Part shown: one piece after another, positions 2,988 to 50,690 of the stretch | Layout of the letters: each line of letters starts with the position of its first letter | Numbering within the stretch: position 1 is the stretch's first letter | Origin: Podarcis melisellensis | Taxonomy: Eukaryota | Reading direction: 5' to 3' (one strand) | Assembly (NCBI GenBank): GCA_964234715.1 | Contig: OZ174285.1 | Length of the DNA: 64,000 nt | The notes under the pieces: generated by a model | What the model saw: the letters and a program-made list of their open reading frames with translations, nothing else | Databases searched by the model: none | Told to the model about the DNA's origin: nothing | Position numbers and translations under genes: made by a program

Positions 2988-5720
2988 GTGAGTGCAAATG
3001 ACTTTCTGCCGTCCCCCATCATCCTCTGTGAAACTCAAAGACTCGTCTTCCCTCTTGCTGCCCTGATGTGGGTCCACCGTGAGGGTTTTTTCTTAGTGGT
3101 GGTTTCCTTCCAGGAGTTCGCTCCAATTAAATCAGGTTTACGGTGCTGTATATGGGAGGACAATTTTGGAGCCCTGAGGTTTTCTTGCAACACAGCATTT
3201 TCCATAAGTGGGGAAGGGGGGAGTGCTTATTTCACATTGCCTAGCAACCAGTAATCTTTATCCAGAGTCATCAGACTGCTGAATGCAACTAAGGAAACTT
3301 GAAGGTCCTTTAGTCCAGCCCCTATTATACAGTTTCTGAATTTCTTCGTAAAGTATTATTGGTAATTCTGAACGGAGAATTTTGCAAATAATGCAAGTAA
3401 CAGTAGTATCCTTTTTGAGGAGGGCCAGTCCACTCTCTTCCTATTTGGGGGTTTGTCTGTGTCTGTGGAGGGGGGATGGGGCCTTTCAGGCAAACTTTGA
3501 GAGGGAGAGAGGGCACAAATTTGGCTTGTGTTGCTTCTGGGGAGGAGTCCTCTCTGCGGCCATTGTAGCCCCCCCCCAAACCCACTTCTGGGCCCAAACT
3601 GCAGGCCAAGAAATGCACCCCCCAAAGCAGCTCGCTGAGGCTGCCACCTGGGATGTCTGTTTTACTGGACTATTTCTTTGTACAGTGTAATGGCTGTTGC
3701 CACACAGGCTTTAGCTGGCATAGTTTGGCTCAAAAATGATTCCTTTAGTGGGACATTCCTCGCCCTCTTAGCTGTTCAGAATGGTGCACAAGTTGTAAAT
3801 GGTCTGAGTTGTGTGCCTCCCCCTCCAGGAAAGGTTTCTGCTGTTGCAGGGGAGCCATATCTTCCAAGAACGTGCAATGATGCTTTTCAGATACTATTAT
3901 AATTTCATACTTGAAGAAATAGGAGAAGGCTACTCCTGCTTAAGGAGTTTGAGAACCTGTGAATGTCGTGGTGGGCTCTCCGGGACAAAAAGCAGGACCC
4001 TTTCCAGCCTCAGCATCCCAGGGCCATGTGCCTTCCGTGGTTCCTGGAAGTGCAGGAATGATGTGCTCTCAGGATAAAGATTGCATCAGTGTCGAAGGAG
4101 CTTTAGCGTTGTGGATCCCACCTTGGTCACTGTCCTTCATTTTAACTTTGAGTATGAGATCACTTCTCTCTCTGCAGCAATATCCCACCACTCCCCCCCC
4201 AGGGGGAGATATATTTAGAAATCTTGTGTTTCATTTCCCAGGTGAAAGCGCTCCTCTCCTATGTGATAAAATGGACTTGGAAGAAGCGGTATACCTGTGT
4301 GTTTGGTTCAGCATGTTTATATTCACGGAGCAAGCTTTGGGTTCAGATGGCTTAAAAAGCTCTCCCACAAGCCATTTCCAAAGTTGCTCAAGGCTTTCAT
4401 TGATGACAGAGAGAATATAATGACCTGGTGTGGAGCTGTTGCATGTTTGTGGTGGTGTTTGCGAAACGAATCGTCTTATCTCGGATAAGATGCCCAGAAG
4501 CATGCTATGAGAATGGCTCCCTGAAGCCAGGATGTGACAGGCTCTTGGCAGTCCCCTGCCGCTCTGCCTGGGACACGTCTGAGGACGAGGTTTCCATCCC
4601 TTTTTTGAAGCAGAGTTCTTGACTGTGTCGTTGGGCATGTCAGAAGCTAGCTCTGTTCTGGCTGGGGCTGGTGGGAGTTGTAGTCCGACGGATCTGGAGA
4701 CCTCCATGTTGGGGACGACTGAGTTAGAGGCGCTTTGGTTAATGGGGGCGGGGTGACGTTTCGGAGCTCTGCACAGTCCCAAACCTCCTTGGGGTACCTG
4801 CAGAGTGCAAGAGGTCTCTCCTGGCCCAGCACTCTGCTTCCAACTTAACCTGCCAGAGTTTTCTGGGAGATTTTCCAGGCACGCATGGTTCCATCACCTG
4901 CTTTTGAGGCACAGGCATGCTTCCCCTTGGGCCATGGATTTTGTGTTCTCCTCTTTTCAACTCCAGCCTCCCTGCCTTTCCTTTCCCCCCTTAATCAGAG
5001 TTCCAAACATTCTGGAATTGGGAAAGCCAGCAAGAGACTTAACTTTTATGTCACTGGATTTGTGATGTTTTCCGGGGTTTCCATTCAAGGAGACCTCTGG
5101 GCCACAGCTGTTTTTCTGCCGTGCCTCTGCAGTCGGTTGTGCTTTGCCGCCTCCTGTTTCTCAGTCTGATCTGAAAAGTGGGGAAAGTATGAAACATTAA
5201 TTGAACCTAATTAGCGCTTGTTGACACTGTGCCTGCTGTTGCTGCCGCCCTCATTGTTCTGACCCTCCTCTGCCTCCACCCTTGGCCAGGAAGTCATGCT
5301 CCTCCTTCCCCTTGGCTCTTGGCAGTGTGCACCTGCCTCACCTGCTGACACAGTTCCGTTTCTGTAATCTGACTGTGCAGCTCGCAAGGGTCTGTCCACC
5401 ATTCCTTCTCTTCTCAACGAGCCCAAGAAAGCCGTGTTGTTTTTACTGCTGTGTGTGTGGTTTTTGTTTCTATTCTGAATTGAACCAGCATCCCTGGTCA
5501 TGTGCTGTTCTGCGTAAGCATGCTCTGAATTTAAAAGTACATGCCTGGCCCTATGGATGTTCTGGGACGCCCGATGCTGTGGCATTGTTGAGGCTGGCAG
5601 CTGTGGAATTGGGTGGGAAGCTTCTGGGGCCCCCATGTCGGAGCAGAATATGCATATAATAAAATATATTTTGGGGAACGGGGATGGGAGCAGACGCCTG
5701 CTTATTCTGCTGTCTTGCAG

Positions 5721-5794
5721 ACATCCCTGAAGAGGAAGCCAAATACTGGACTCAGAAGTTAAAGCAGATAAACTCCTTGGAGGAAGATGAGGAG
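5721..5794 (+). CDS. UNC13B: UNC13B coding exon: DIPEEEAKYWTQKLKQINSLEEDEE (helix following C2A)
   Basis: Acceptor tcttgcag| and donor |gtgggt. 74 nt, phase 1 to phase 0. Confidence 0.95.
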
Positions 5795-7210: not shown

Positions 7211-7268
7211 CATTCCTTTGCGGAAGAGGTCCAGAAGCAGCCGCTGCCCACTGCTGCCTCCCAGTGTT
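7211..7268 (+). CDS. UNC13B: UNC13B coding exon: HSFAEEVQKQPLPTAASQC
   Basis: Long pyrimidine tract with ttag| acceptor, donor |gtaagt. 58 nt, phase 0 to phase 1. PLPTAAxQC is the Munc13-2 linker motif. Confidence 0.93.
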
Positions 7269-9124
7269 GTAAGTGAGAAATGTTCAGTCGCTTCGTATTT
7301 CCGTCCTTCAGCAGGTTGTCGTGCTTTGCTTTCTTTCTGCAGTAGAACAAAGTGTGTTTGCTGAGCTGTCAGTACTTCAGAACCCTGGCAGTAAGGATCC
7401 CTGTGCCAGCCCTGTCTGTCTGGGTCTCTCTTGGTCCTTGCATTCAGACATGGTGTTCGCCTGTCCTTCGTTCTGTGGTTTGGAGAGTGCCATGTCTTTG
7501 GGTTCAAGGGGGCCTGTGGGGCCGAGGCAGAAGCCTCCCTTGCCAAGCCCTTTCTTGGCCTTGCAAGTCTGGTCAGGCTTGAAGCCTCTGCTGGCCACTG
7601 CAGGGCCCCCCTGTGTCGCATGGCAATGGGAGCCGAAGTGGGCTGCCTCCAAGAACGGCCGCTCTCTTGCTCAAAAAACGGGACCCCTTGGGCCAGGTGT
7701 CTTTCAGTGTGTGGACAAGACTGAGTTTTCTGGTGGAAATGGGAGCATAACATCCAAAATAAATAACCACCTTCTGCATGCAAAGCGGGAAGCGTTCTAG
7801 GGGCCTTGATTCTGCATCAGCAAAAGTGGCCGGGTTCATGCTTCTCTGTAGCCCAGCATGGAATAAACGATGGTTTGCCATGACTGAGAACCCATGCTCA
7901 GCCCTGCCTGCTTCACTCTGCCCCCAACTGGAGCGCAGAAGCGAGGCCGCCTGTCTTACCATTGATGTGTGAAGCAGCACTTGCGGGATATTTTCCTCCA
8001 AATCACAACTGTAAGCCAAGCTTTGCTTGCTGCTCATTTGAGATAAGCCGCCGTTTGTTTCTAGCTGTGGGTCACTGTCAGATGCTTCCATTGTCAAATC
8101 TGGAGCTCCAGGTGTCAACGACGGCTCCTTCTGTAGGCCAGGGTGCCCCTATTCCCAGCCCCTCCCCATGCCCTGGGGAGATGTGGGGCTGGGGGGATCT
8201 CAGCTGCAACTCCTGCCAAGAGCTGCAACTCCTGCCAAGTGGTGCTGATATTTGGATGCAGGGCGTAGGAAGGGGCGAGGGCAGTTTTGTTAAACGCTAG
8301 CAAAGAAAACGGAACAGATCCAGCTTTCTCTTGCTAAGTGGTGTGCCAATCTCCAAGGCTTTGCATATCTGAACTGCTCTCCTCCTTTGAAACCTGGTAA
8401 GACTTGGTATTCAGAGTATTACATGTTGCCGGTTGCTTATCCACTAGGCTGATTAGAGGCTCTCTTCAAGAAGGTTAACATTAGGAATTGTTAATTACCC
8501 TGTTGCTGGACAAGCAAATTAAATATCTAGTAGCTTAATTACTTTTCTAATATCACTGAGTGGCATTGTATAAACTCATTATTCAAGTATTTATTAAATT
8601 TTTATACCACTTAATAGGAATGAAAAATTCTAAGTTGTTTACATAGAAACTTTACAAAAGCAAGTATTTGTGTGGGGAGACCCCCCCCCCTTTAACTGAC
8701 TTGGATTGCACAGGATTTGGAGAAGGACATTGACTTAATTGCATATTAAAGCCCATGTGTGACTGAGCAGAAGAGACAAAGGGCTTGCAGTTCACTGCAT
8801 TAGTGCAACTGAGCTGCACAGCTCTAAGCCCTGCAGGGCTGGAGATCATCCTCACTAGGCCTAAGGATGGCAAGCGGGCACAGGACCAAGCTTCGCAGCT
8901 CATTACAAAGGCCCATCCAGTTGTGCGCCGGGCTCTCCGCCGCCGCCGCGAAAGGCCGGCATGATGGAACAGGGAGTCGGGGGAGATGCCTTGCCCTTCA
9001 GCTGTGGTTGACTGCAACTTCCATCATTCCTTGGCTGAGACTGATGGAGAAGCCCAGACTAAGAGGGGTGTATGTCTTTTAGTTGCTTTATATTAAAAGC
9101 CATGGTCACAAAATGTTCCCTATA

Positions 9125-25117: not shown

Positions 25118-25340
25118 CTTTTGAAGACCACGATAGTGCTGTGGATGACAGAGACAGCGACTACCGCAGCGAGACCAGCAACAGCATTCCTCCCCAGTAC
25201 CACACCACCTTGCAGCCCAATGCTTCGGTGCACCAGTTCCCCGTGGCTTCCCGCCTGCAGCAGCAGGGGGTCCCCCGAGAGTGCTGTGTGGAGTCCCTGC
25301 ACGGCTATGATTTGGATTACCACGAACGAGCAGCCATCAG
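25118..25340 (+). CDS. UNC13B: UNC13B coding exon: [30 protein letters not shown]...[11 protein letters not shown]
   Basis: Acceptor ctgtcttctag| and donor |gtaggt. 223 nt, phase 1 to phase 2. [18 protein letters not shown] is diagnostic for Munc13-1/ubMunc13-2. Confidence 0.96.
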
Positions 25341-26664
25341 GTAGGTACCCCCTTGGAACCAGGGCGTTTTCTTCCCCCAACCACAAATTTATTGGCAGGA
25401 GAAACTCACCGTAAGCTACCAAGACTGGGGCTGGCTGCTTCAGACTATCTTGTGGTCAGGTTCTTAAAAGAAAAGCCATTCTGCTGCTTCAGGGGTGACA
25501 GAAGAGCAGTGAGCAACAGCTGCCAGACACGGGTCCCCCCCCCAGAATAGCCCAATGGGAGCAAAGAGAGCTTTGCAGTTGAGCCTCCTCCTTGCGAAGC
25601 AGAGCTGGTGGTAAGCAGTTCTTTTTGCTGTGGAATTTTGGGATCCCCAGGTTGTCGCCCTGAGTGACCAAGAGTGACTGACGATATGTGGATCAATTTC
25701 ACTTGAGATTGCAAGTCGTGCTGACCCTCAGGATGCCCCTCTTGCTGAGATTTGGCTTCCGTTGCCTCGCACCCATCCAGACTCCTGGCATGATTGCGCA
25801 ACCACCAGTCCCACACGCCACACACTTGCTTTCACTTTCCATTTTACGATACTAAGCTGTTTGAACCTTCTGTGTTGCTCTTGTCCTTCACGTCTCCCAA
25901 CGTCTCCTTGCCTTTTTGAAGAAGGCGCCATAGCTTAGACTCCACTGTGAGTGGCCGAACTGACCTGGAATCTGCATCACAGTCAAGTCAAATGACAAGC
26001 CGCCAGCTGTCATTAGAGAGCCGCCACTCACTAGAGGTGTCTGATAGGTGGGTGACCCTCTCCGAAGCCTCTGTGTCCGTGTCTCGTGACGTGGCTTTGG
26101 TCTGCTGGGGTTCCTGGGCTGGCTATCAGTGTTTGCATGAATACATCCTCTTCCAGGCATAGTTGCCGGCTGGCTGTTTTCTGTTGCTTCTCTTGTTTCA
26201 ACTGGGTTTTTGTTTCTCTTGAACATTTGTACCAGCCCTCTAAAGAGAGAACTGATGCAAATCATTACCTTTCCTCCATACTAGGCCTTTAGAACCTTAG
26301 ATCTATCTAATTTATCCTCATATAATTACTTTGGTTTCTAATTGTCCTGTCAATACTGTAGCTGGAGTTTTTAGGATTCATGTTTTCAACTCTGACTTGC
26401 CCATCATATCTTGTTTGTGCTGTCCACATGGTTAATGGAAGTAACCCCAAATAATAATTGGAACAGTTCCTCATTTTGCGCCTTATCAACATGATTGTTG
26501 TTTTTAATTTATTTACCTCTAGCGATAAACCACAAGTAAGATAATGGGTTTTTCCTGTTTTGTTGTTTTGTCACATTGCAAATTTAATTAATTGATGCAC
26601 TTTATTGTGTGCTTAGTGTAATAACTTATTATTAGTCTGTTGCAAATGCCCCTTCTTAAAATCA

Positions 26665-26975: not shown

Positions 26976-27384
26976 TGAGACGCTCCAGAAAGTGACTTGT
27001 AACATTTTAGGTAGCTGCTCATTGACATTTTTAATCCGCAATTCCTGTTCTTAACAAAAGCTTATAAATAACATACCATACATCACTTGATAGTATACAT
27101 AACACTGGTATACATGTTTCGTTCTCTCCTACCCCTACAACCCTACTATTTAGCTGCTGCAGTAATAATAAAAGAGAGATTCCTAACTTTTCATGTTAAT
27201 AAATGGATTCATTGTTATGATATTTTAATATAGTTTTTGCATGTGATTCACGATATCATTTGGTCTTTATGAAATGCTCCTTTGCAAGTTTTGTGTTTAA
27301 AGCTCTTTTTTCACCCCTCCTGCTCTTTCCTTTTTTTCTTTGCCCTTCTGTCCTTCTTATATTTTCCCCCTCCACACATATCAG

Positions 27385-30300
27385 ACCAGGATCTTTAGTT
27401 AGCAATGGGAAAGTCAGGATCATTCCATTTGATTACGAAGTTGGCCAAGAACAGGAAGAGTGTGAAGAGAACTATGAGGAATTAGGCAAACAGTTAATAG
27501 AAGATTTTTTAGAAAAAAGTCACAGGACTAGAAGTTCACAGGGACGAAGGAGCCCGAGACTCTCGAAAAGGGAGAACTTTGGCCATCCTGAAAGAGGAAG
27601 ATACTCACGGAAGGCTTGCCCAGAATCGGGAAATCCCGATGTTCCTTGCTATCCAGAGGAATATGACACAATAGACAGGAGAAGAAAGAAGAAGCTGCGA
27701 TATAACAATTTTGAAGAATGCGACCGAACTATATTGCAAAGCAGTGGTAACCGGAAATTTTCATCAGGCAGCATTAAAGCAAGAACTGAACATAACCTAT
27801 ATCCTGATTATGATGAAACTGAGAAATGGGGCAGCAGCCCCATTGAAAGTGAAGAACAGTTACCGGAATATCCAGTTCTGCGTCCATACAAGAATGGCCT
27901 TCTAGTCAAGAGTGGCAAGTTGTCCGCTAACCAACGTGCAAAGCATGACTTGGGATCAGTCCATTTTGATGGTGAAAATGAGATCCATTCAGAACAGCCA
28001 GCTCACTCTTTTGTGCCATTGGGTGCCCTTAAAGAGTTTGGCAGCTGTTCGTCCAGTGTACTCCTGTACTCCCCAGTTTCGGATGATGATGATGATGAAA
28101 TGGAAGAAATAGCAATACTTTCCCAAGCATGGCGTGAATCCAGTGTTCGCCATGTTGGAGACCTTACTGACGCCCGTACTGGAAGTGCCATATCCCTGTT
28201 ACCAAGGGACAAAAACTCACATAGGATGAGAGGAGGAAAGCACGGCTTTCTTAAGCAAGACTTGACCCTCTCTCCTGTTGAAGAGCCAACGGAAGAATAC
28301 GTGGACACAATGGATGAACTGCAGTGCTTAGTTGAAACTGTGTCTGAATACTTAGCTGAAAAAGAGGAGGAGATTAGCAAATTTGAAACCCTTCCTGCGA
28401 GCAAAAACGCAAGCGATTGTGCCTCTCCCAAACTGGCCGGTGCTGATAAGTTGGCGGAGGAAAGTGCCCCTTTGGAGCAGGCAAAGCCAGCCGCTTCTGC
28501 CACAGAGGAGAGCGAGGGCAGCAAAGGCATAACAGAGGCATTGCCAGACTTGTCTGGGGTGAAGAACACGGTCAGCTCCTTGTTTAGTTCTTTCACTGAA
28601 AAGGTGGGCTCAGGAACAAAGCACTTAACAGCCTCAGTTGAAAAACTTGTATCCCCCACACCAGAGAAATCTGAAGCCCCTGGTCAACCTGAGGGAGGCA
28701 TCACAAGTCTGTTTTCAAGTAAGCCTAAGTCTGAGGGTGCCTCTCCAGAACTGAAAGCAGAAAACAAATTGGATGCCAAGCTGTCCACTGCAACTTCTCC
28801 TTCTGTGACCCAGAGCAGCCGTGAGCGAGAAGCCGGTGATGCCAAGGCCAGCATCCCAGAAAAGACAACAGGAGATGACAAGGCTCCTCCAAGTGTCCAG
28901 GATGCTTCAGCAAACGCTGCTCCGCCCCCTTCCCTGGACCCCAGCTCAGTCGTGAACTCCGTCTTAGGCATCTTCAACCCTTTGAAAATCTTCTCCGAAA
29001 AGGAAGCACTGAAAAAAGAGACTGCAAAACAGGAGGAGGCTGTGAAGGTGGAAGCCACGCATGCCAGTGCTTCTGAAGCCAAGGCAAGTGCAAAGGCAGC
29101 TGAAGGCAACGCGACAAAACCCACCAACATTGCGCCTCCCGAAACGAGCAAGAGCGAGGCAGAAGCGAGCGCAAGCAGCGGCCCCGTCTCCTCCATCTTT
29201 GGCAAGCTGTCGAGCTCCATTAGTTCTTTTAGCTTGAAAGCCAGTTTTGAGAGTTTGGCTGTTCCCAAGCAGCCAAGTGGGCCGCAGAAGGCTCCTGATG
29301 CGCCGCCGCAGGCCACAAGTCAGCCAGATAAAGTTGTTAAAGAACACCCAGACATGCCAAGAAATCCACAACCTGCAGGGAAAGTGCCAGAAAACAAGCC
29401 AAGTGAAGCCAAGAAGGAGGCTGGTACCGCTCCGCCGTTGGAGCAGGGGGAACCATCTGAGAGCTTTTTCAGTCCACTTAAGAAATCCTTCAGCCAGATG
29501 CTGCTCCCTTCTTCTGCTACCGAAACTGTGCCAAAGGAGCCACCACCGGGCTTGGGGAAAAGTCACCGTTCTGAAGATGATGTCAGGAAAACGAGCTCCG
29601 CAAGCAGCGAACCCAATTTCCCTTTCACCGGTAAACTCCAGATTCCCTTTTTGAGCGGTTTTGGCTTTTCAGACAAACCACCGCAGGACAACAAAGAGAA
29701 GCCAGGAATTTTCACTTCCTTCTTGAAAGCTGCTTCTGTGGAAAACCTGACAGCTTCAAAAGATCAAACTGCCCCACCAAGTTTTAGTGGCAAGCCACCA
29801 AAGGCTGAAGAGGGTCACAAAAGCAGCAACGCGGAAGCTGCCAAAACAGAGTCGTCAAAGTCTCAGGCAGTTCCCGAGGCACCGCAGAGAAAAGAGGAGC
29901 CGGCGAGGAAGAAAGAAACCAGTAAAGAAGATGGTCTGGGTGCACCAAAAAGTGGAGATAAAAAGCAGGGTGCCTCAGACACTTCAAGAATTGCGCACAT
30001 GGATCATGATACCAAAGGCATGGGTGCTCTGGACCACAAAGATTCCAAATGCAGGGGGGAGCTGGCAGCCCCCACAAAAGAACCTGACTTAAATACGACA
30101 GCAGGAAAGCCAGTGCTTCCTGGTGGAATCAGAGAGGACCAGGCAATGGATGATACGCCGAATAAGGCCCCACAGCCAGGGCAGGGGTTGCTCTCGGGCC
30201 TCTTCCGGCGGCCGTCTTCAGACCACATAACCCACAGCGAAGAGTCGAATGCTAAAAATGAAACGGACAGCCAGAAGAGCAGATCAGCTGGCTTACTTTC

Positions 30301-33300
30301 TGGATTATTTAGGTTTGCTTCAAGTGAAAACCTGACCGAAAGTATGCCAGATAAGGCAAAATCAGGCTCTCTGGGCATAATGAAGTTTTTTGAGAGGAGC
30401 GAAGAGCCTAGTTCTGGTGACAAGTCCGTTGGCTCACATGTGACTCCCGGTCCCCAAGAAAGCACTGGGGGGAAACCGGAGACAGGCAGCTTCATAAAGA
30501 ACTTCATGCAGAGGCCAAAAGAAAAAGTGGAGGAGGCAGTGACCGAGACTGCGAAGGCGAATGGTCATTTGCCTCACCCAGAACTGAGCAAGATGGAGAA
30601 CGGACATGGTGTCGTCCCTTGGCATCCCCCCTCTCAGAATGCTTTAAGCTCACAGCCAAAGATACAAGACTTATCGGGGCAGCGAACTCTTTATAGACAA
30701 CCTATGGATTCCAATATTTATCAAGCAGTTCTCAACGAAAGGTCAAATGAATTTCTCAATTCCTCTTTGCTGAATGCTAAATTGCGTGGCCACTCAGAGC
30801 AGCATCTTGCTCTTGAGGAAACAAGGAGCAGCCCCTCTAGCTTTGACTGGGAATATGATGCAGGAGCATTTTCTCTTAACGCCCACCAGGTTTCCTTGCC
30901 AGTTTACTACGTCTTGCAGCAGAATTCTGTCCCACTGGCTGAGTTTCTGGAATGGCCAGACTCCAGTGACGCTGCAGTGAACTTGTGTAAAAAAGATGGC
31001 AATGCCAATGTCGTGGATTGGAGGTCAAATGCAAATTTTGATGCTCTGAGCATGGATTTCAGTGTCATGTCCCACGAATCGTTTGATCAGTTAGACTTAC
31101 AAGATTTAGGTCTAGAAGAAACTGAAATGTGGACAACGCATTCTCTGAATGGAAACTTTCCTCCATTTGATGACTGCAGCTATATTTTGGAAGAGATGCC
31201 CATGGACTTAAGCTATTCGTCAGCATGTGATGGCAATATGTGGACCTTAATTGATCAGGAGTCCTTGAGCCTGGATGGCAGTTTTGTCTATTCATCTTAT
31301 AGCCAGGAGTACCAGGACTGGCTGACGCTGCTTGAGAAGGGCGTGTGGTGGCCATCGGAAGATGGCGATTGTGGATATTACATGTACAGGGACGGTCAGT
31401 TTGTTTATTCTCTGCTCACCGACCCCACTGGGCAGTATGTCTACATTTGCACTCCTGACACTTACACCTACCCAGACTACTGGGATTATAATTATCCGCA
31501 GAGCATTTTGCAGAGCTCTGTCTTGGAAGATGACATGATTGCCGTTTGCGGTTTCAAAGTGCCTCTTGGTAATGAAGACGAGTTATTCTGGTTTGCTGAA
31601 GAGGAGCAATTGGATAATTACTCTGTAAACAAACCACTTGATTTGTCTGTAGCTCTGCAGAGAAGTGATCAACTTATGAACATGAATTTAGAGACCTTTT
31701 CGCAGATGTTTGAGGAGTCCATTTATTACCAGAGAGAGCAGCCTTTAGACTTTTCAGGGTACAAACTTCAAAAACTCAAAGTAGACTTTAGGCCTGAGAA
31801 TGACATGGAGTGGCGCTCAGAAGAGCCTCCCCTGACCCTTGACCTTAGAGTTCACTCCAGGGTGGCTTCCAGCGGGAGGCTAAAAGATGATGCTCTACCC
31901 AAACATCTGGACAGGACTCCTGCTGTGACAGTTTCCGAAAGTGCACAGTCAAGACGGTTTGGTTTCCATATATTCCAGTCTTCTGCCAAGCCGGAGCCTT
32001 CATCGGCGTCTCAGAGTGTTACAGAAGTCAAAACCACTGAAGAAGATAAAAAGCCACCTCTGAATAAAGTTGCATCTTTATTCTCTGCTTTGGGTGGCCT
32101 GATGGGTAAGGGTTTGGAAGCACATGAGACAGTGGAAGACGCGGCTGTGAAGAAAGGAGAACCGGTGGTGTTGGGACACAAAAACGATGCTCTTCCAGCT
32201 ACGCCACCCAGGAAAACAGGAGAGGATATCCAGCAGCATACTGAGCATGAACAAGAGAGAAATGAGAGAGGCAGATTAGTTAAGTCTGTTAGGGATGAAA
32301 AGCCAGTGATTTCTCAGAAAAAGCCTCAGCTAGTGAGGTCTTCCTCTCAGCTCAGCCAGGGTCCCGTGGACAGCAAGACCAGTCAGCTGGATCAAAGTGT
32401 TAAGCCTGCTCCCCTCCCAAGTCAACAGAAACCCAAAGTGGGTGTGGATGAACCCAAGAAAACCCAGCCAGCCCCCAGCCAAGCGCCCACAGAGGCTGAG
32501 GGCACGTTGTTTAAAAGTGCTCTCAAGATTCTCAGCCTGGGAGAAGACTCCTCCACAACTGCAGCACCCAATAAAAGTCAAGGCCCCGGGTTCTTTGATT
32601 TCTTTAAAACGCAGGTCAACAAAGCCCCACAGCCACCACCAGCACCCCAACCAAATCTGCCGAAAAATGAAGCCGAGAAGAAAATGCCTCAGGAGAAAGT
32701 GGAGCCCCCAGGCATTTCATCATTCTTTGGTTCCATAGGGGATCTTTTCAAAGTCGATGCCGCCCCTGCCCCACCAAGTGCCGCTGCTCCACCAAAGAGT
32801 GGAACCCACACCTCCCTGAAACCGAATGACAACGCAGACCAGCGTAGCAGAGAGCCAAGTAAGAGCAGCGCTCCTGCTCCTCAAATCCCCGTGGAGCAGG
32901 CTCGTGGGGAAGCTGCCCAGAAGCCCGCAGTCCCTAAGGAAGAACAGCATGGGAAAGTAAGCAAGGAAACTGCTCCAGCGAAGAAGGAGGACATCCCCAC
33001 TGCAGGGAATGCAGAACCCAAGCCTCCCGTGCAGGCAGGCCCTCGAATGGACCAAGCAAATCGCTCTCCAGGGCAGCATGGCCACGGACCAGCTGTTGCA
33101 CCGGGACCGCAAGGCCATGCAGGAGCCATACCTGGTAAAACTCAGCCAGGAAAAGCCAGTCAGCCACCCAGGGAGTCTGGGTTTAGCCTGCCTTTTGGCT
33201 TGTCGCAGGCAGCACCTTCTAAGCCTCCGCAGGCACCACAGCCGGCTGGCAAGAGCATCTTCTCCTCCTTCTTTGGTGCCCCAGAGAAAGCCCCTGCCCC

Positions 33301-36229
33301 AGCTCCAGCAGCTCCTAATGCCAAGCCCCCGGAAGCAGAGGGTCTGTTCAAGATGCCTTCTTTCTTTTCTGGAGGGCCCACCGCAAAGAAGAACATGCCT
33401 CAGAGCAGCTCCAGCTTCAGCTTTTTCAACCTGACCTCCTTCCTGGATGACAAACCACCAGCAGCTGCTCCTGACAAGGGGAATATTGCAAAGCCACCTC
33501 AGCAGCAAGCAAGCAACCTGGGAAGGCCGCCTCAACAGCAAGCAGACGCAAAGCCATCTATGAAGCAGTGTGTTTCTGTTGACTCTGGCATTGGACTTGC
33601 CAGACAGCAGGGCTTGAAGGATAAAGAGGCAGCGGAGGGTGTTATAGAAGCAGTACTTGGAAAGCAAGAGGCTGTTGGCCCGGAGCACAAGGCAAGTGAG
33701 TTAAAAACTCCTGCGGCTGAGCATGCTGCGGCAAGTGCTTCAGAAGTAAAAAATGAGGTAGAGATACCTTTTGTGGCCAGTAAACCTCCTGATGATGGTA
33801 CAGATAGAGAAGACCACTCAGTCTATCCTGATCCTGGCTCTCAGGTCCCTACGCTGCAGGAAGACATTGCACCTTCCCTTCCGGAGATTCCACAACCAGA
33901 GGAGCAGCTGCAAGACAATGCAGAAAAGAGTGGTGGTATTGTGGTGTCCTCTGAGAAGGAATTTGTTCCTTTAGTTGGGAACGAGACTTTTGAAAAGGCA
34001 GAGCCCGGTCCAGTTTGTGATGAGACCTCTGTGGCTCTTGAGCCATCTCTTGCTCCTGGAGACCTTTCACAGGAGGTTGTACCTGAAGAAAAACCAAGCG
34101 CCCCTGAAGTCAAGCCCCCGGAGCCCAAGCAACCTGATAGGACCCCAAATACTGCAGGAGAGCAGCAGGCTCAGGGCCAGAGGCCTCTCCCTCAAATGGC
34201 AGCAGCAACACCTAACCTGCAGGAGAAACCTAAAGAACCTGAGGCTGACAAATCAGTTCTAGATTCCTCAGTTGAAATGTTTTCCAGCTTCATGACGAAG
34301 ATGAAACCAACCAAAACATTATCTGGCTTCTTTTCCCAGCCTCAGACTCCAGCAGCTCCTAGTGCCCAAAAGAAGAGCACTTCGTTTTTCGGCCTTTCCT
34401 CCCTGCCCACTGGGCCTCCTCCAGCATTCACAAGTGATCTCTTTGGCATTTTTAAAGGAGCAGCAGATGAGACCCTTTCAAAGCCTGCAGGGAAGACCGC
34501 AGGCACTTCAAAAGCCCAGGAAATGAGCTCCAGGGCAAAGGAGGCTGTGGGCCCAGTTCTTGGTAAAGGTCTCGCAAAACAAGATAAAGCCTCTAGGGAT
34601 CAACTTTTAGGGACAAATGCCGGCAGCGTTTTGAAACAACCCGACCAAACCTCTAGGGCTGAACCTACAGAGAAAGAAGCTAGCAGTGACTTGAAACAAG
34701 ATGCCTCTTCTGCTTTAGCAGGTGAGAGTTTGGGGAAAGAATGTAGGGCAGAATTGGAAGCTGAAAGCAGTGGAAGACCTGAACATGGTCTGGAACCCTC
34801 CCTGAATGCTTCAGAAACTTTAGACTCAAGTAGGGATCAGGGCCCTGAAGTGGTACAGCTGGACACAAACTTACTGGCATCTGATGAAGCAGGGAAGGCT
34901 GCCCCGTATAGTCAAGAGGTACATGATGCAGCTGAGACGGTGGTGCTGCAGGAGAAGAGTGAAGTGCCTGTGGAGCCCTTAGAAAATGATGCTGTCCCTG
35001 CTGTTGAAGAAGAGCAAGTGAGCCCAGCAGGAGAAACAGACGTTGGCCAAATGGATTTGGACAGTACACATGAGCTGGAACCCAAGGTTGGTGAGGAAGA
35101 GGAACACCTGAAACTGCCAGAACTGACGGATACTTCACTAACCACTGAAGAAGTAACTATAAAGAATGAGGCAGATATTGATATTTGCCCACCAGACACG
35201 TTTGAGACCCTGGAGATGGAACCCAAAGCTGCTGCAGATGAGGCCCATGACTTGCCCCATCAGGATATAGAAAAGGTCCCTGAAATAAAATCTGATCTTC
35301 CTCCTGAGCAGAAGGAGCCTCTAACCATCAGCGAAGCAGCCCCAGAAGCTGCTCCCTTGAAAAGCAGTTTGGCTGGTAAGAGCAAGCCAGCCAGTGCTCC
35401 TGCAGAGGCCAGCAGCACCAAGCCCATGTTTGAAATTCCAAGCATGCCCACTTTGCCCAAATTCGGCTTCATGTCTTCTGCAGACAGCAGCAAGCCATTT
35501 GGCTCCTTCTTCTCTGCACAGCCGCCTTCGGCAAGCAAGCCTGCGCCTGAGCCAGGCCTCGTCTCCAGCTTCAACAAGTTTTCCTCAAGTCTGTTTGGTG
35601 GAGGAAGTGATGAGAAAGCAGGTAAAGTAGAGGGCACTCCGGGTGCTGTCTTTGGAAAGAAGCTGGACTTCTCATTTCCGTGGCAGAAAGATGCCAAGGA
35701 GGCAAGTCTCAAGAAGGAACCAGATGTGCCAACACCAAAAGCTCCCTCCAAACAGGAGGCGGCCCCAATTGCTTCATCCAAACTAGATTTGAAGGCACCA
35801 GAAGTTCTCTCGAAAGCCGAGGAACAAGCAGTGGATGTGGCCGGGGCTGACGGGAGCCCAAACCTCTCTGCCTCTGACCAGCCAGCCGACAGTGCTGCTG
35901 ACTCAGACCTTTCTTCTAAGCAGCCTGACAGCAAGAGCAACGAATGCTTCGATGGTCCCACACCTGACATTCCGCTTGCGCCCAGCAAGGAGCTGGAGCT
36001 TGAGGTCCCCAGAGAAACGGAAGATGAGCCAAGCACCATTTCCAGTGAGCCTCCTGGGCTCCCTTTGGAGGAACCAGCAGAAGGCGCCACACAGGTTCTG
36101 GATGAAGTAGAGCAGAAGGAAAGTGTCCCTTGTCCAGAAACGGAAACACTTGCCACTGGACTGCAGCCGGCGGAGCAGAGTAGCCCTGAGCCACTCAGGA
36201 AGAAAAGGCCAGTAGCCAAAACAGCATGA
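27385..36229 (+). CDS. UNC13B: UNC13B giant exon (~2,940 codons, mostly disordered). It ends either at a GC donor after 36207 (internal cassette) or at TGA 36227-36229 (terminal).
   Basis: Uninterrupted ORF 27260..36229. A long pyrimidine tract and tcag| acceptor at 27384 give phase 2, matching the upstream donor (AG|A = Arg). An 8.8 kb stop-free frame is not expected by chance. Confidence 0.92.
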
Positions 36230-36729
36230 TAAATGGTGCCAACTTGTGAGCCATTTATAATGCAAGTGCCGTAACAGTAGATGCCTGACCTCGTAGATCA
36301 GACTCCTCTAGGCTGTGTTTGGCATTAGTAGTACCCAGTGGTAGGTAGAGTTGTGAACACTAGTTGCTAGACTGCCCACCCAGCGCCTCTCTTGCCCTTC
36401 TCCTTCTCAACTTCTGGCTTCCTTTGTTCCAAAAGGCTGCGATGACTCTTCCCCTTTGCTCTCCTTTGTGCTGTGTCCTTGTGAGTGAGCTGCTTTGAGT
36501 ATTAGTTTCATTAACCTTCTGTAGCCTGATTGTGTGCGTGAGAAAACAACTTGCACCTCTAGATGACATGGTGGGAGGGAGGAAATTGGGGGCTCTCTTG
36601 GTTTGCAGAAAGCTTAGTTAGACAACATACAAGGCATTCACGTTTTAAGGTGGGAGAGAGACCCAGATGGCAGCAAAAGCTGTTTCAGTGGTTGCAGTTC
36701 AGTCACCTGCAGCATAACTTTTCTAACAC

Positions 36730-38212: not shown

Positions 38213-38509
38213 TCCTGCCAGCAGTAGTAAGTTTGGTTCCTCCTGTAACATCAGTCAGGGAAGCTCTCAGCTGAGTGAGCTGGACCAATATCACGGGAGT
38301 GTGCCCTGCTCCGAACACGAGGACGAGCTCACAGAAGGAGTGCCTGCTGCTGCTGCTCCTCACCCAACAGAGGGCCCTGCACCATCTAGTGAGCAGCACG
38401 AGCCCCAGGAAGTGCACAGGGAAGGAGAGGGGAAGGTGAAAGAACATGCCACACCTCAACTACCTCCTGAAGTGGACGAGCCCAAAGAAGCCACAAAGAC
38501 ACCGGGCAG
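38213..38509 (+). CDS. UNC13B: UNC13B coding exon: (S)[27 protein letters not shown]...KTPG
   Basis: Branch point tactaat, acceptor ctctctcacag|, donor |gtaggt. 297 nt, phase 2-2. [20 protein letters not shown] matches ubMunc13-2. Confidence 0.93.
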
Positions 38510-38965
38510 GTAGGTGGTGCACGTTGGCCATGGATTCCTTGGAGTTGAACTTGAGGCCACTTTTCTGGTAGATCTTGGGAGAGACAAACAGGATATGGGT
38601 GTAGTGCCATAGCTGGTTTTGAGTGCCCACTGCTGTCTAGGGTCAGAAAGGGGGGGGGGACAAACTTCATTAAATAAATCTTCATTAATCCTCTTCATCA
38701 TCATCATCATCATTTTACACCCATCCAGTGACTAATGGGGCGCATTCCTTACAGGGTTCTCTACCACAGTCCCTGTTGGCCACACTTTCTGTTCTTTCCA
38801 TGCCATTCTCTGTCTTTTGCTGGCCATCCCAGTTCTCTTGGGGCCAACTGTTCTCAGCGTTTGTTCCCACCATTACAATAAAAGGTTCTTTTCATGTGTT
38901 GAGTTTCATGAGACTGCTCTTGAGTTTCCAGCACTCATTTTCCCCTTGTTTTTCCTTTTTGCAAG

Positions 38966-39056
38966 TCACCTTGATGAAAATGAACTTCTCCTTCTTCCCG
39001 CTGCAAGAGCCCGCTGGATCCGAGCCATTACTAAAGTGCGGCTTCAGTTTGAAGAG
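38966..39056 (+). CDS. UNC13B: UNC13B exon with the ubMunc13-2 calmodulin-binding helix: (S)HLDENELLLLPAARARWIRAITKVRLQFEE
   Basis: Pyrimidine tract with gcaag| acceptor, donor |gtaggg. 91 nt, phase 2 to phase 0. ARAxWIRAxTKVRLQ is the Munc13-1/ubMunc13-2 CaM site. Confidence 0.94.
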
Positions 39057-42000
39057 GTAGGGCCCGCGAAATGTCTCTTCCCCCATCCTTCCACCCGTGT
39101 CTGCGCTTGTAAACCTTGCCGTGACTTTTGTCTGAAGGTTGCTTTGCTTGTCTAAGGGAGACACCATTCTGGGGCAACTGCACAAACGGTGCATGTGCCT
39201 CTCTGGTACCAACAACTTGCTGAAGTTGACTGTGGTGGGCTTAATTTGTTGACCCCATGGCAGAGGGGTGCAGAACTTGTGCCCCACCAGATTTTGTTGG
39301 ACTCTCTCCTCAGCCCCAACAGCCAACAGGGCTGGGATTGGGGCGAAGTTGGAGCTCAGCGACATCTTGGGGCACCAAGTTGGCTACCTGTGTTGTGTAG
39401 GAAAACCAGGATTATTTATGGAAGTGTTGCGTTGACACCACTGTTCCGTTGTGCCTGTAGTTTGTCTTCTGAGGCCCTTCTCTATGTTCCCTCTCCCCAA
39501 AAGGTTTGGAGGGTGACAACACAAGAAAGGGCCTTTTTAGTCGTGGGTCCCCCTCTGTGGAATGCTCTCCCCAGATACTTTCCCAACCCGTTGTGGGTGT
39601 GTGGGAGAGGAGACCCTTCCATGAACTACTGTGCTGCTCCTGGCTGCCTCCCGATTTCACCCCAGAGAGCACCCAGAAGCCGAGTGTTGTCTGAACAGGC
39701 CGGAGCAGAGAGTGGCAGCAGGTTCCCTCTCTGCGCCATGTTGGATGCTGCCCTGGCCAGCGGAAGGCCATTGATGTACCCCGGATCAAAATAGGCTCAT
39801 GTTTGCAACCTTGTCGTTATAGATGGATCAGAATTCACACAATGTCACTGGGCTCTTCCGAGGGTGGGCTTAGCACTGCAACTGTGTTGTTGAGGTATCA
39901 CAAAAGGGTCCTTAGCAGCAATGATATTTTTCATGGAAAGGGGAAATCTGAGCTAAATGTGGGGGAAATACAGGGTGGCAGTTTTAGGGGATTCTGCAAA
40001 ATAAGAGCATGCAAAAGGAGCAGCTATCTGACACTGATGTCAGGCTTTCTTAGCAGTTTCTCACGCAGGGCAGAAACTGTGTTTTGCTACACAGAGTATC
40101 AAAACACTTTTGTAATTCTTAAGCAGGTCAGCAGCCTGTTGAGTTGAATTAAAAGATCCTGACGGGTGTAAGAAATGTGAGATATTTTCAAAAAGCCGTC
40201 AACCCAAGAGCTTTAACAGAACAACCTGGCGAGTTTGTCTGTCTTCTGAAAAATGCTGCTTTGAATCATTTAGTGAATTGTTTTGAAAAGTAAAACTCTC
40301 AAGAGCGCTGAAGGCTTCTGCACACAAAGAGAATTGGTGGTGTGTGAACGACAAGCGGCTCCTGATGGCTGCAAGCAGACCCCTCCTGCCTTCACGTCCC
40401 CCCCTCCGTCTGCTTTCTTGTGGGGCAGAGAAACTGGCAGGATGCGCCGTGGAAAGCTTTTGCCACTGCAAGATGCTGCACTGGCGTTTCTCCAGAAGCA
40501 CCAAGGTTTTCTCTTGATGCATCTCCTGGGAGTGGGAGATAGGAGTACAAACTTGTCTGCTGTGAGCAGGAAGGTTCCTTGCGCGCCTGTCAAGATTGGT
40601 ACATTAACTCTTTTTCGTTATTCTGGCTTGTGCTTGTGTCGTGTTTCACTGTTCACGGAAGAGAGTTGTATTCAGTAGCATCAACAATAAGTTGGGTATC
40701 CCCCTTTGCATCTTCTATAACCTTTTTTGGAAACTCTTATAGTTGCAATACTCATCCTCAGTTGCACCCATTTCAGAGCTGTTCAGGATAGCAAACTATC
40801 GTCCCAACTGGAATTTGGTTCCAGTGGAAATAGCATTTTTCAATAATGGACCTGGTGGAGTAGGCTCCATTCCTGAAATCATTTGACCCAAACTGGAGCC
40901 TGGCAATTCAGTCATGCCCTCACACACGTGTGCAACCCACATGGTCCGAGTCATCAGGCAAATCAAAGGTTTGGAAGGTGGGTGCCCTCTTTCGCTTTGG
41001 GCGGAGTCTGACTCCCCTGTGTGGGACACTCTTTAAATGCAAAGGTGCACACTGGTTAAAGGGTGAATTTTCCACATTTTGGGGTTCTCCTCTGTTGCAA
41101 ATGAACCTTAACCAGTCCTGGATCAAATCGGGACTTGAAAGCTGTGAACGTTTGGCTGAAATCTTAATCCTTTCACACCAGATACGCTTGGAGTTCAGGC
41201 AAGCAAGCCAGACTGAATTTTGCTCTGCTGCGTTTGTCAGCAGCTGGTACCGCAGCTGTTGTGTGTGGAAAGCAAAACGGAGAAGGAGAGCCTTGTGTGT
41301 CTTGTAGATTTAAGTACTATGAAGCGAAAGACTGGTCAGAGACACCTGTCTGTCTTGGAGTTGCAGGTTCCTGTGCGGGGCTACTGGTGTGGAAACATTA
41401 CATCTGGGGTGCAAAATAATAAATATGTTTCACATAGCGTAGAAAAGACTATACATATGTAGTATTATTCTAAAAGTGTCATGTGGCATATACTTTTGAC
41501 TTCCCTTTAAAAAAGCTGTTTACATTTCCATAAGAGATTATAGTCCTTTTTGTGTGTGTGTGTGTGGGGGGGGGGGTATTTACACGCATTAACTCCTGGC
41601 GTAGTAGCTTGAATATTGGCAAAGTCTGCATGTTGTCCTTAATAAAGTTTTTGACACTTATATCCAGGTTGATGAATATTCATAGGGCTTTCTGGGTAAA
41701 TTGAAAGTGAATCCATCTGGAATGAGAGTCAGGAGAGAATTATATGTCAATAGCCAGGCTTATTAAATTGATACAAATGAATGTGTCTTACCTTCTTGTT
41801 GTTGGCAAAGGAGGACCATTTTGGAAATCCTTGTAATGTTACGTGGAGGTAGCAATGGGTATTCTCTGAGGAACTGATGGGGATCTTCTGATCTGGATTG
41901 CAGTGAGGGGCCAGGTCACATTTTACTAGAAGTTGCAGAAGGGGAGCTGCAAGTGCCCCCTTGGATTTGCAGAGGGCTCCTTCCCTAGAAACCCTCCCGT

Positions 42001-50490: not shown

Positions 50491-50690
50491 NNNNNNNNNN
50501 NNNNNNNNNNNNNNNNNNNNNNNNNNNNNNNNNNNNNNNNNNNNNNNNNNNNNNNNNNNNNNNNNNNNNNNNNNNNNNNNNNNNNNNNNNNNNNNNNNNN
50601 NNNNNNNNNNNNNNNNNNNNNNNNNNNNNNNNNNNNNNNNNNNNNNNNNNNNNNNNNNNNNNNNNNNNNNNNNNNNNNNNNNNNNNNNNN
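50491..50690. other. Assembly gap (200 N)
   Basis: Run of N. Confidence 1.

Follow-up and report, generated by a model that had tools for sequence, protein, structure and literature searches.

The window analysed here, a stretch of 64,000 nucleotides from the lacertid lizard Podarcis melisellensis (GenBank assembly GCA_964234715.1, contig OZ174285.1), contains a giant alternative exon of the vesicle-priming gene UNC13B (Munc13-2) at 27385–36229 on the plus strand, about 2,947 codons long, and the disordered part of the protein that it encodes carries a long series of short islands built around Phe, Ser and Gly. We tentatively favour the reading, drawn from the sequence, that some 25–30 of these islands may act as a multivalent string of weak membrane-adsorbing mini-helices. 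A first reading of the same letters (the original prediction) had proposed more than 20 dispersed Ser/Gly/Phe motifs resembling amphipathic lipid packing sensor (ALPS) helices between 28560 and 35690, and had quoted 15 of them. By listing each Phe with its context, all 15 were found in the translation of the open frame 27260–36229 (+), at residues 438–2810 of that frame (28571–35689); residue numbers below refer to the same frame.

For counting, Phe residues spaced by at most 10 positions were grouped into one island, and the statistics were confined to the disordered part of the exon, with the central Tyr/Trp-rich island (aa 1140–1545) left out. This part holds 42 Phe islands, 25 of them with at least two Phe, and between 28560 and 35690 there are 32, of which 24 have at least two. 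The claim of more than 20 dispersed motifs is thus confirmed, the string exceeding chance in four tests. Another Phe lies at most four residues away for 53 of the Phe, as compared to 20.6 ± 5.1 in 2,000 shuffles (maximum 37) and to 33.9 ± 4.8 if shuffling is restricted to blocks of 30 residues. Within three positions on either side of a Phe, further Phe is enriched 3.4-fold, Ile and Met 1.9-fold, Ser 1.8-fold and Gly 1.5-fold, and Ala and Val (both 0.33-fold), Gln (0.40-fold), Glu (0.53-fold), Pro (0.61-fold) and Asp (0.68-fold) are depleted. Among the 75 Phe, the dipeptide Phe-Gly occurs 12 times (5.2 expected), Phe-Ser 18 times, Ser-Phe 19 times and Phe-Phe 11 times (2.8 expected). Ser, Thr and Gly make up 32% of the islands and 22% of the spacers; the islands are 17% charged with a net charge of +1.8 per 100 residues, as compared to 28% and −3.8 per 100 residues for the spacers. 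Some sub-patterns recur: there are about eight copies of Ser-Phe-Phe-Ser/Gly, four to five of a hydrophobic-Phe-Ser-Ser-Phe type and two of Gly-Leu-Leu-Ser-Gly-Leu-Phe. Since no tandem DNA repeats were found in the exon, and its dispersed repeats are only short and weak, this recurrence does not result from recent duplication. A 21-nucleotide direct repeat (81%; 29731–29751 and 30316–30336) encodes an Ala/Ser-Ser-x-Glu-Asn-Leu-Thr tail just behind two different Phe islands, which suggests that an extended motif of about 16 residues was duplicated within the exon long ago.

The motifs had also been described as amphipathic, and in aggregate they are, across one to three helical turns only. When Phe, Leu, Ile, Met, Trp and Tyr are counted as bulky residues, pairs at i+3 and i+4 spacing number 59 and 61, against 35 ± 5 expected for either, and i+2 pairs are at chance. 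The mean z-score of the hydrophobic moment, for which each island was held fixed and its own residues were permuted, peaks at 90–100° (0.95, t = 4.2) and is negative at the beta-type angles of 150–170°. Amphipathic windows of 11 residues number 16, as compared to 1.5 ± 1.2 in shuffles. We also devised an ALPS-like test, in which a segment of 18 residues should have no internal Pro, a moment of at least 0.35, at most three charged residues, at least five Ser/Thr/Gly and at least four bulky residues. Five segments pass (0.35 ± 0.54 in shuffles), and these long windows are roughly sparse in bulky residues. A rough scan on the Wimley–White interfacial scale gave 24 segments at −2 to −4.8 kcal/mol (cut-off ≤ −2), against 7.3 ± 2.1 in shuffles.

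The identity of the exon follows from its boundaries, its relatives and its neighbours. It lies within a very long open frame (27260–36229, 2,989 codons), starts at 27385 behind an acceptor AG (27383–27384) that is preceded by a pyrimidine tract, and its frame closes with TGA and then TAA at 36227–36232. In a word-based protein search, the top relative was 'protein unc-13 homolog B isoform X1' of Zootoca vivipara, with 91% identity over the full length, and the 256 relatives continue with squamates, turtles, birds, marsupials and placentals. Many of these are predicted isoforms of 4,100–4,600 residues with C2, C1 and Munc13-homology domains, and in the full-length isoforms of birds, turtles and mammals the C2, C1 and Munc13 domains lie around the giant-exon region. 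Other isoforms in the databases, of about 3,200 residues, end where the giant exon ends and comprise C2A and this exon without the priming module. The full-length isoforms of birds diverge from the alignment about five residues ahead of the stop of the exon. When three orthologue proteins were mapped onto the window, the C2A-domain exons fell upstream and further UNC13B exons downstream (Table 1). Because of this arrangement, the giant exon is assigned by alignment to UNC13B, as an alternative exon inserted after the RIM-binding C2A domain; its orthology was borne out, and so was its location, with the C2A exons on one side and the rest of UNC13B on the other. A Pfam scan of the entire exon matched no family, a search of the sequences of solved structures with the exon returned a single match at chance level, and a literature search found no paper describing it.

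For conservation, the exon was aligned with 28 orthologues, and identities of islands and spacers were computed against the 27 amniote orthologues other than that of Zootoca. Conservation across orthologues, a check put forward with the original prediction, bears the motifs out: identity is 0.54 in the islands and 0.31 outside (0.41 and 0.21 for mammals alone), and part of the string can be followed to frog and sturgeon. The most conserved residue is Trp, followed by Phe with an identity of 0.65; in the Phe columns, 71% of the cells hold Phe, 19% another bulky residue, mainly Leu, and 2% a gap. At 22 of the 32 islands, at least 70% of the bulky residues are retained in mammals. Four of the five long windows pass the ALPS-like test at the same position in 25–28 of the 28 orthologues, and the fifth is confined to reptiles and birds. 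The alignment consists of sharp, near-identical blocks with unalignable spacers between them. Islands occur in the same order across the orthologues, and spacer lengths are conserved at an identity of 0.23–0.39. For example, the spacer at 32768–33247 has 162 residues, with a median of 164 (range 141–202) across amniotes. Since spacer lengths remain constant while identity is only 0.23 in this case, the data suggest that selection acts on spacing and not on spacer sequence.

The conservation extends beyond amniotes. A profile of the central island and the motif region that follows it, compared with 1.84 billion representative sequences, matched 71 proteins, all of them large, and the named proteins that were looked up among these matches were of the UNC13B type, from frog, sturgeon and teleosts. 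In frog and sturgeon the islands at aa 1600–1625, 1774–1786, 1817–1836, 1997–2009, 2026–2040 and 2049–2065 are recognisable, and the fish proteins likewise have clustered Phe and a surplus of amphipathic windows. Judged from these alignments, the motif string is therefore older than the split between ray-finned fish and tetrapods.

Two compositional features argue for a membrane as the interface that the islands would bind. The enrichment of Ser and Gly and depletion of Ala, Glu and Gln beside Phe resemble the signature of an ALPS motif and would not be typical of a soluble docking helix; the low charge and slight basicity of the islands in an otherwise acidic chain also seem to favour a membrane. 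Given the precedent of Piccolino, which is discussed below, capture of vesicles by such a string would be a reasonable idea. Each island would be unfolded in solution and fold as an amphipathic helix of 1.5 to 5 turns on a hydrophobic interface, most likely at packing defects in the strongly curved membranes of small vesicles. With about −2 to −5 kcal/mol each on the interfacial scale, single contacts would be weak, and useful binding would therefore have to come from avidity along the string, which may be anchored at the active zone by the RIM-binding C2A domain that is encoded just upstream. Four or five islands appear long enough for strict ALPS-like behaviour, and the remaining ones, as shorter and denser hydrophobic patches, would bind with little curvature selectivity. 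AlphaFold2 models of two motif-rich segments, based on alignments of 29 rows, were disordered in both cases (mean predicted local distance difference test score 47–49), with slightly higher confidence at the islands. This outcome fits segments that fold only upon binding, and does not separate the hypotheses considered here.

A number of observations weigh against adsorption of the islands to membranes as ALPS helices. An uninterrupted helix-capable length of about 18–40 residues was found for only five of the 32 islands, and most of the remaining ones lie in Pro-free spans of 2–15 residues. Together with the i+7 spacing of bulky residues, which is at chance, this means that most islands cannot form classical ALPS helices of 20–40 residues; about 20 of them are 5–14 residues long, bounded by Pro and often provided with Phe-Phe doublets. 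These doublets, which many short islands carry, are fourfold over-represented in the string and should lower curvature selectivity (PMC6164224). The moment z-score at 100° exceeds 1.64 in only 12 of 28 islands, and the AlphaFold2 models contain few helices, three or four short ones (aa 435–446, which is of low confidence, 564–568, 1750–1754 and 1778–1780). Furthermore, whole blocks differ little between sturgeon and lizard, and their polar residues are conserved as well: identity inside and outside the islands is 0.66 and 0.33 for Ser, 0.58 and 0.23 for Gly, and 0.76 and 0.45 for Lys. Such residue-specific conservation seems to go beyond the demands of bulk physical chemistry, and would be compatible with specific protein partners as well. 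The ALPS-like label of the original prediction therefore stands in part. A helical amphipathic arrangement of bulky residues and a conserved, low-charge polar face of Ser, Thr and Gly are present; length and i+7 periodicity do not agree with the label, and the Phe-Phe doublets of many short islands do not seem to agree with it either. Most islands have the chemistry of ALPS motifs without their length and, it seems, without their sparseness.

The membrane reading and the two alternatives that follow are not mutually exclusive. The first alternative, which we consider somewhat unlikely, holds that the islands are helical docking motifs, i.e., short linear motifs or molecular recognition features that fold into a groove of one or more protein partners, with the giant isoform serving as a scaffold for proteins and not for lipids. 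The conservation just mentioned suits this idea well, as each island has kept its own sequence near residue for residue over 300–430 million years, polar and charged flanks included. Most islands are of motif length (5–14 residues), the recurrence of sub-patterns hints that one site is recognised repeatedly, and the i+3/i+4 spacing suits a groove-binding helix equally well as a membrane helix. However, pre-structured docking helices would not usually have polar positions so rich in Ser and Gly with so little Ala, Glu and Gln, and neither a Pfam family nor a solved complex was matched. Known docking motifs are also scarce: the sole Phe-x-Asp-x-Phe, of the AP-2 type, is lost in placentals, and reading of the translation by eye gave just two Asp-Leu-Phe and no Asp-Pro-Phe or Asp-Pro-Trp.

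According to the second alternative, which is distinctly less probable, the islands would act as aromatic stickers that cohere with one another, with charged and Pro-rich spacers between them, and would drive or tune phase separation of the giant isoform in the manner of Phe-Gly (FG) nucleoporins or of aromatic-rich kinked segments; vesicles or further proteins of the active zone might join the condensate. A sticker-and-spacer layout with spacers conserved in length at an identity of 0.23–0.39, the persistence of Phe as Phe (71% of the cells), the excess of Phe-Gly and the predicted disorder of the region would all be in agreement with this. Nevertheless, a helical i+3/i+4 periodicity without a beta-type moment is not expected of stickers of either kind, Gly follows only 12 of the 75 Phe, the aromatic residues are clustered in blocks instead of being evenly spread, and block-wise sequence conservation goes beyond what generic stickers need. 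That the motifs are a functionless compositional by-product of an exon in which Ser is the most frequent residue (348 of 2,946) is highly improbable, since all shuffle tests are exceeded, the islands are about 1.8-fold better conserved than the spacers, Phe ranks second among the conserved residues, and islands persist in frog, sturgeon and teleosts.

Two more specific candidates were tried and rejected. Genuine FG-nucleoporin repeats, with many cores of the FG, GLFG or FxFG types as their recurring unit, were discarded on composition, as Phe-Ser, Ser-Phe and Phe-Phe are comparable to or commoner than the 12 Phe-Gly among 75 Phe. A string of endocytic adaptor motifs for clathrin and AP-2, which would show repeated Asp-Leu-Leu/Phe, Asp-Pro-Phe/Trp, Phe-x-Asp-x-Phe or Asn-Pro-Phe in an acidic context, was discarded in view of the depletion of Asp (0.68-fold) and Glu (0.53-fold) beside Phe and the failure of placentals to keep the single Phe-x-Asp-x-Phe, the other motifs having been looked for by eye in the translation.

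The closest precedent for the membrane reading comes from a giant protein of the active zone. An ALPS motif in Piccolo/Piccolino was reportedly predicted by Drin et al. in 2007. In the disordered N-terminal part of Piccolino, one Ser/Gly/Phe ALPS motif of 19–22 residues was described (Gierke et al., J Cell Biol 2026, PMC13394108). Among liposomes of the vesicle-like kind, this motif binds those of 30 nm best, and the recruitment of vesicles to an ectopic site depends on it; the authors argue that weak single contacts act through avidity (PMC13394108). UNC13B resembles Piccolino in having low-charge amphipathic Ser/Gly/Phe segments in a disordered part, and the Piccolino motif has been proposed to hold vesicles by avidity. 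In contrast to the one tested motif of Piccolino, UNC13B has five candidates of similar length and about 20 shorter ones. ALPS motifs are defined by a polar face of Ser, Thr and Gly, by the absence of charge, and by bulky residues that occur sparsely, roughly once in each turn, as in residues 1–38 of GMAP-210, and pairing of the hydrophobic residues abolishes curvature selectivity (PMC6164224). The UNC13B islands share the bulky residues, the Ser/Thr/Gly face and the low number of charges with the classical motifs of ArfGAP1, GMAP-210 (aa 1–38), synapsin I and Vps41 (PMC6164224), and are predicted to be unfolded in solution as these are. Unlike the classical motifs, which have 20–40 residues and about one bulky residue per turn, most of them are 5–14 residues long, bounded by Pro and often provided with paired Phe.

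Comparison with other systems shows both likeness and difference. With FG nucleoporins, the string shares Phe-centred patches on a long disordered chain, hydrophilic drifting spacers and strongly conserved Phe; it differs in having only 12 Phe-Gly, neighbours dominated by Ser and Phe, helical spacing and individually distinct islands, and in belonging to a vesicle-priming gene. Large alternative N-terminal exons are known from Unc13 genes, as in Drosophila Unc13A and Unc13B and mammalian bMunc13-2, and the giant exon described here is not covered in that work (PMC5379939). In these proteins, too, isoform-specific disordered N-terminal regions set the anchoring of a shared priming module (PMC5379939), whereas the lizard exon differs in following the C2A domain of the ubiquitous-type isoform and in its length of about 2,950 residues. 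Novel aspects would be how many motifs there are, that they occur in a Munc13 isoform, and how old they are.

The features of the exon are collected in Table 1. Its best conserved part is the central island at aa 1190–1530, with identities of 0.5–0.75 per bin of 50 residues and many invariant Trp, Tyr, Gly and Asp. The matches to fish proteins centre on this block, which has no Pfam assignment and resembles a small folded domain within the disordered exon. An acidic Leu/Glu-rich block at 28289–28438 (aa 344–393) is conserved as well (0.67; 0.62 in mammals), lacks Ser/Gly/Phe character, and is an island of a different type, possibly a helix. Contigs from sequencing runs that had been labelled, as a guess, as RNA derive from a related species with about 96–97% identity and span the giant exon. 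Because they continue through the upstream intron (27100–27384) at a depth equal to that of the exon, it was probably DNA that was sequenced, perhaps by capture or as a genome at low coverage, from a sister species that is about 3–4% diverged. One older run has fragments that are confined to the interior of the exon, a weak hint of expression. Elsewhere in the window, a run of 200 N at 50491–50690 represents an assembly gap or a masked stretch.

Table 1 UNC13B exons and conserved features of the giant exon in the window (identities and retention as fractions; moments are hydrophobic moments)
Feature	Position	Strand	Observations
C2A-domain exons, upstream	150–251, 1487–1717, 2861–2986, 5720–5794, 7211–7285, 25120–25341		
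UNC13B exons, downstream	38214–38411, 38964–39116		
Long ALPS-like window 1, aa 430–458	28547–28633	+	18-residue moment 0.47; Pro-free span 36 aa; passes ALPS-like test at same position in 28/28 amniote orthologues
Short Phe island, aa 568–582	28961–29005	+	Overall identity 0.76; bulky residues retained in every clade
Long ALPS-like window 2, aa 642–662	29183–29245	+	Moment 0.41; 10 Ser/Thr/Gly per 18 residues; reptiles and birds only (15/16 sauropsids pass, 1/12 mammals)
Short Phe island with Phe-Phe doublet, aa 732–748	29453–29503	+	Identity 0.66; 100° moment z 2.5; split by Pro
Two Pro-interrupted Phe islands, aa 783–807 and 814–825	29606–29734	+	Wimley–White −4.3 and −2.9 kcal/mol
Twin Gly-Leu-Leu-Ser-Gly-Leu-Phe islands, aa 978–986 and 1013–1023	30191–30328	+	Bulky residues retained in every clade; 11-residue moments 0.53–0.54
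Two short Phe islands, aa 1039–1048 and 1074–1086	30374–30517	+	Less conserved in placentals
Central Tyr/Trp-rich conserved island, aa 1190–1530	30827–31849	+	Outside motif string; kept out of statistics
Long ALPS-like window 3, aa 1600–1625	32057–32134	+	Moment 0.51; Pro-free span 34 aa; passes in 25/28 orthologues; recognisable in frog and sturgeon
Two islands, aa 1747–1755 and 1774–1786 (latter with two Phe-Phe doublets)	32498–32617	+	Identity 0.86 and 0.73; substitutions of Leu for Phe and Asn for Asp in placentals; seen in frog and sturgeon too
Long ALPS-like window 4, aa 1817–1836	32708–32767	+	Moment 0.45 (18 aa) and 0.71 (11 aa); passes in 27/28 orthologues; almost unaltered in frog and sturgeon
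Three near-adjacent islands, aa 1997–2009, 2026–2040 and 2049–2065	33248–33454	+	Phe retention 0.81–0.97; 16- and 8-aa spacers constant in length; present in sturgeon
Four near-adjacent islands, aa 2337–2348, 2353–2362, 2372–2381 and 2386–2402	34268–34465	+	Identity 0.58–0.80; all bulky residues retained in mammals
Two islands, aa 2720–2728 and 2731–2755	35417–35524	+	Phe retention 0.83–0.96
Long ALPS-like window 5, aa 2765–2785	35552–35614	+	Moment 0.46; 9 Ser/Thr/Gly; Pro-free span 28 aa; passes in 27/28 orthologues
Last island, Phe and Trp, aa 2794–2810	35639–35689	+	Identity 0.76; Wimley–White −3.5 kcal/mol

The holding of vesicles at distances of tens to hundreds of nanometres from their site of release still awaits an explanation, and it was only in 2026 that a lipid-based tether, the ALPS motif of Piccolino, was reported. 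Similar but mostly shorter motifs, conserved as a string in a Munc13-2 isoform, would suggest a priming factor with a vesicle-capturing arm of its own. In its most far-reaching form, which we regard as unlikely, giant Munc13-2 would be a long-range vesicle tether: with C2A bound to RIM, the 25–30 ALPS-like islands, on a flexible chain of about 2,500 residues with length-conserved spacers, would capture small vesicles through defects in lipid packing and pass them on to the priming module that the protein itself carries. The stop-terminated isoform without the priming module would then just hold vesicles. The motif string would also supply precisely located peptides that can be tested. Independently of this, the giant exon stands out, within a well-known synaptic gene, as a large and ancient portion that apparently has not been studied. 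If the tether idea is true, the exon would encode the first multivalent ALPS array, and tethering and priming of vesicles would be united in one gene, in an arrangement conserved since the ancestor of the bony vertebrates.

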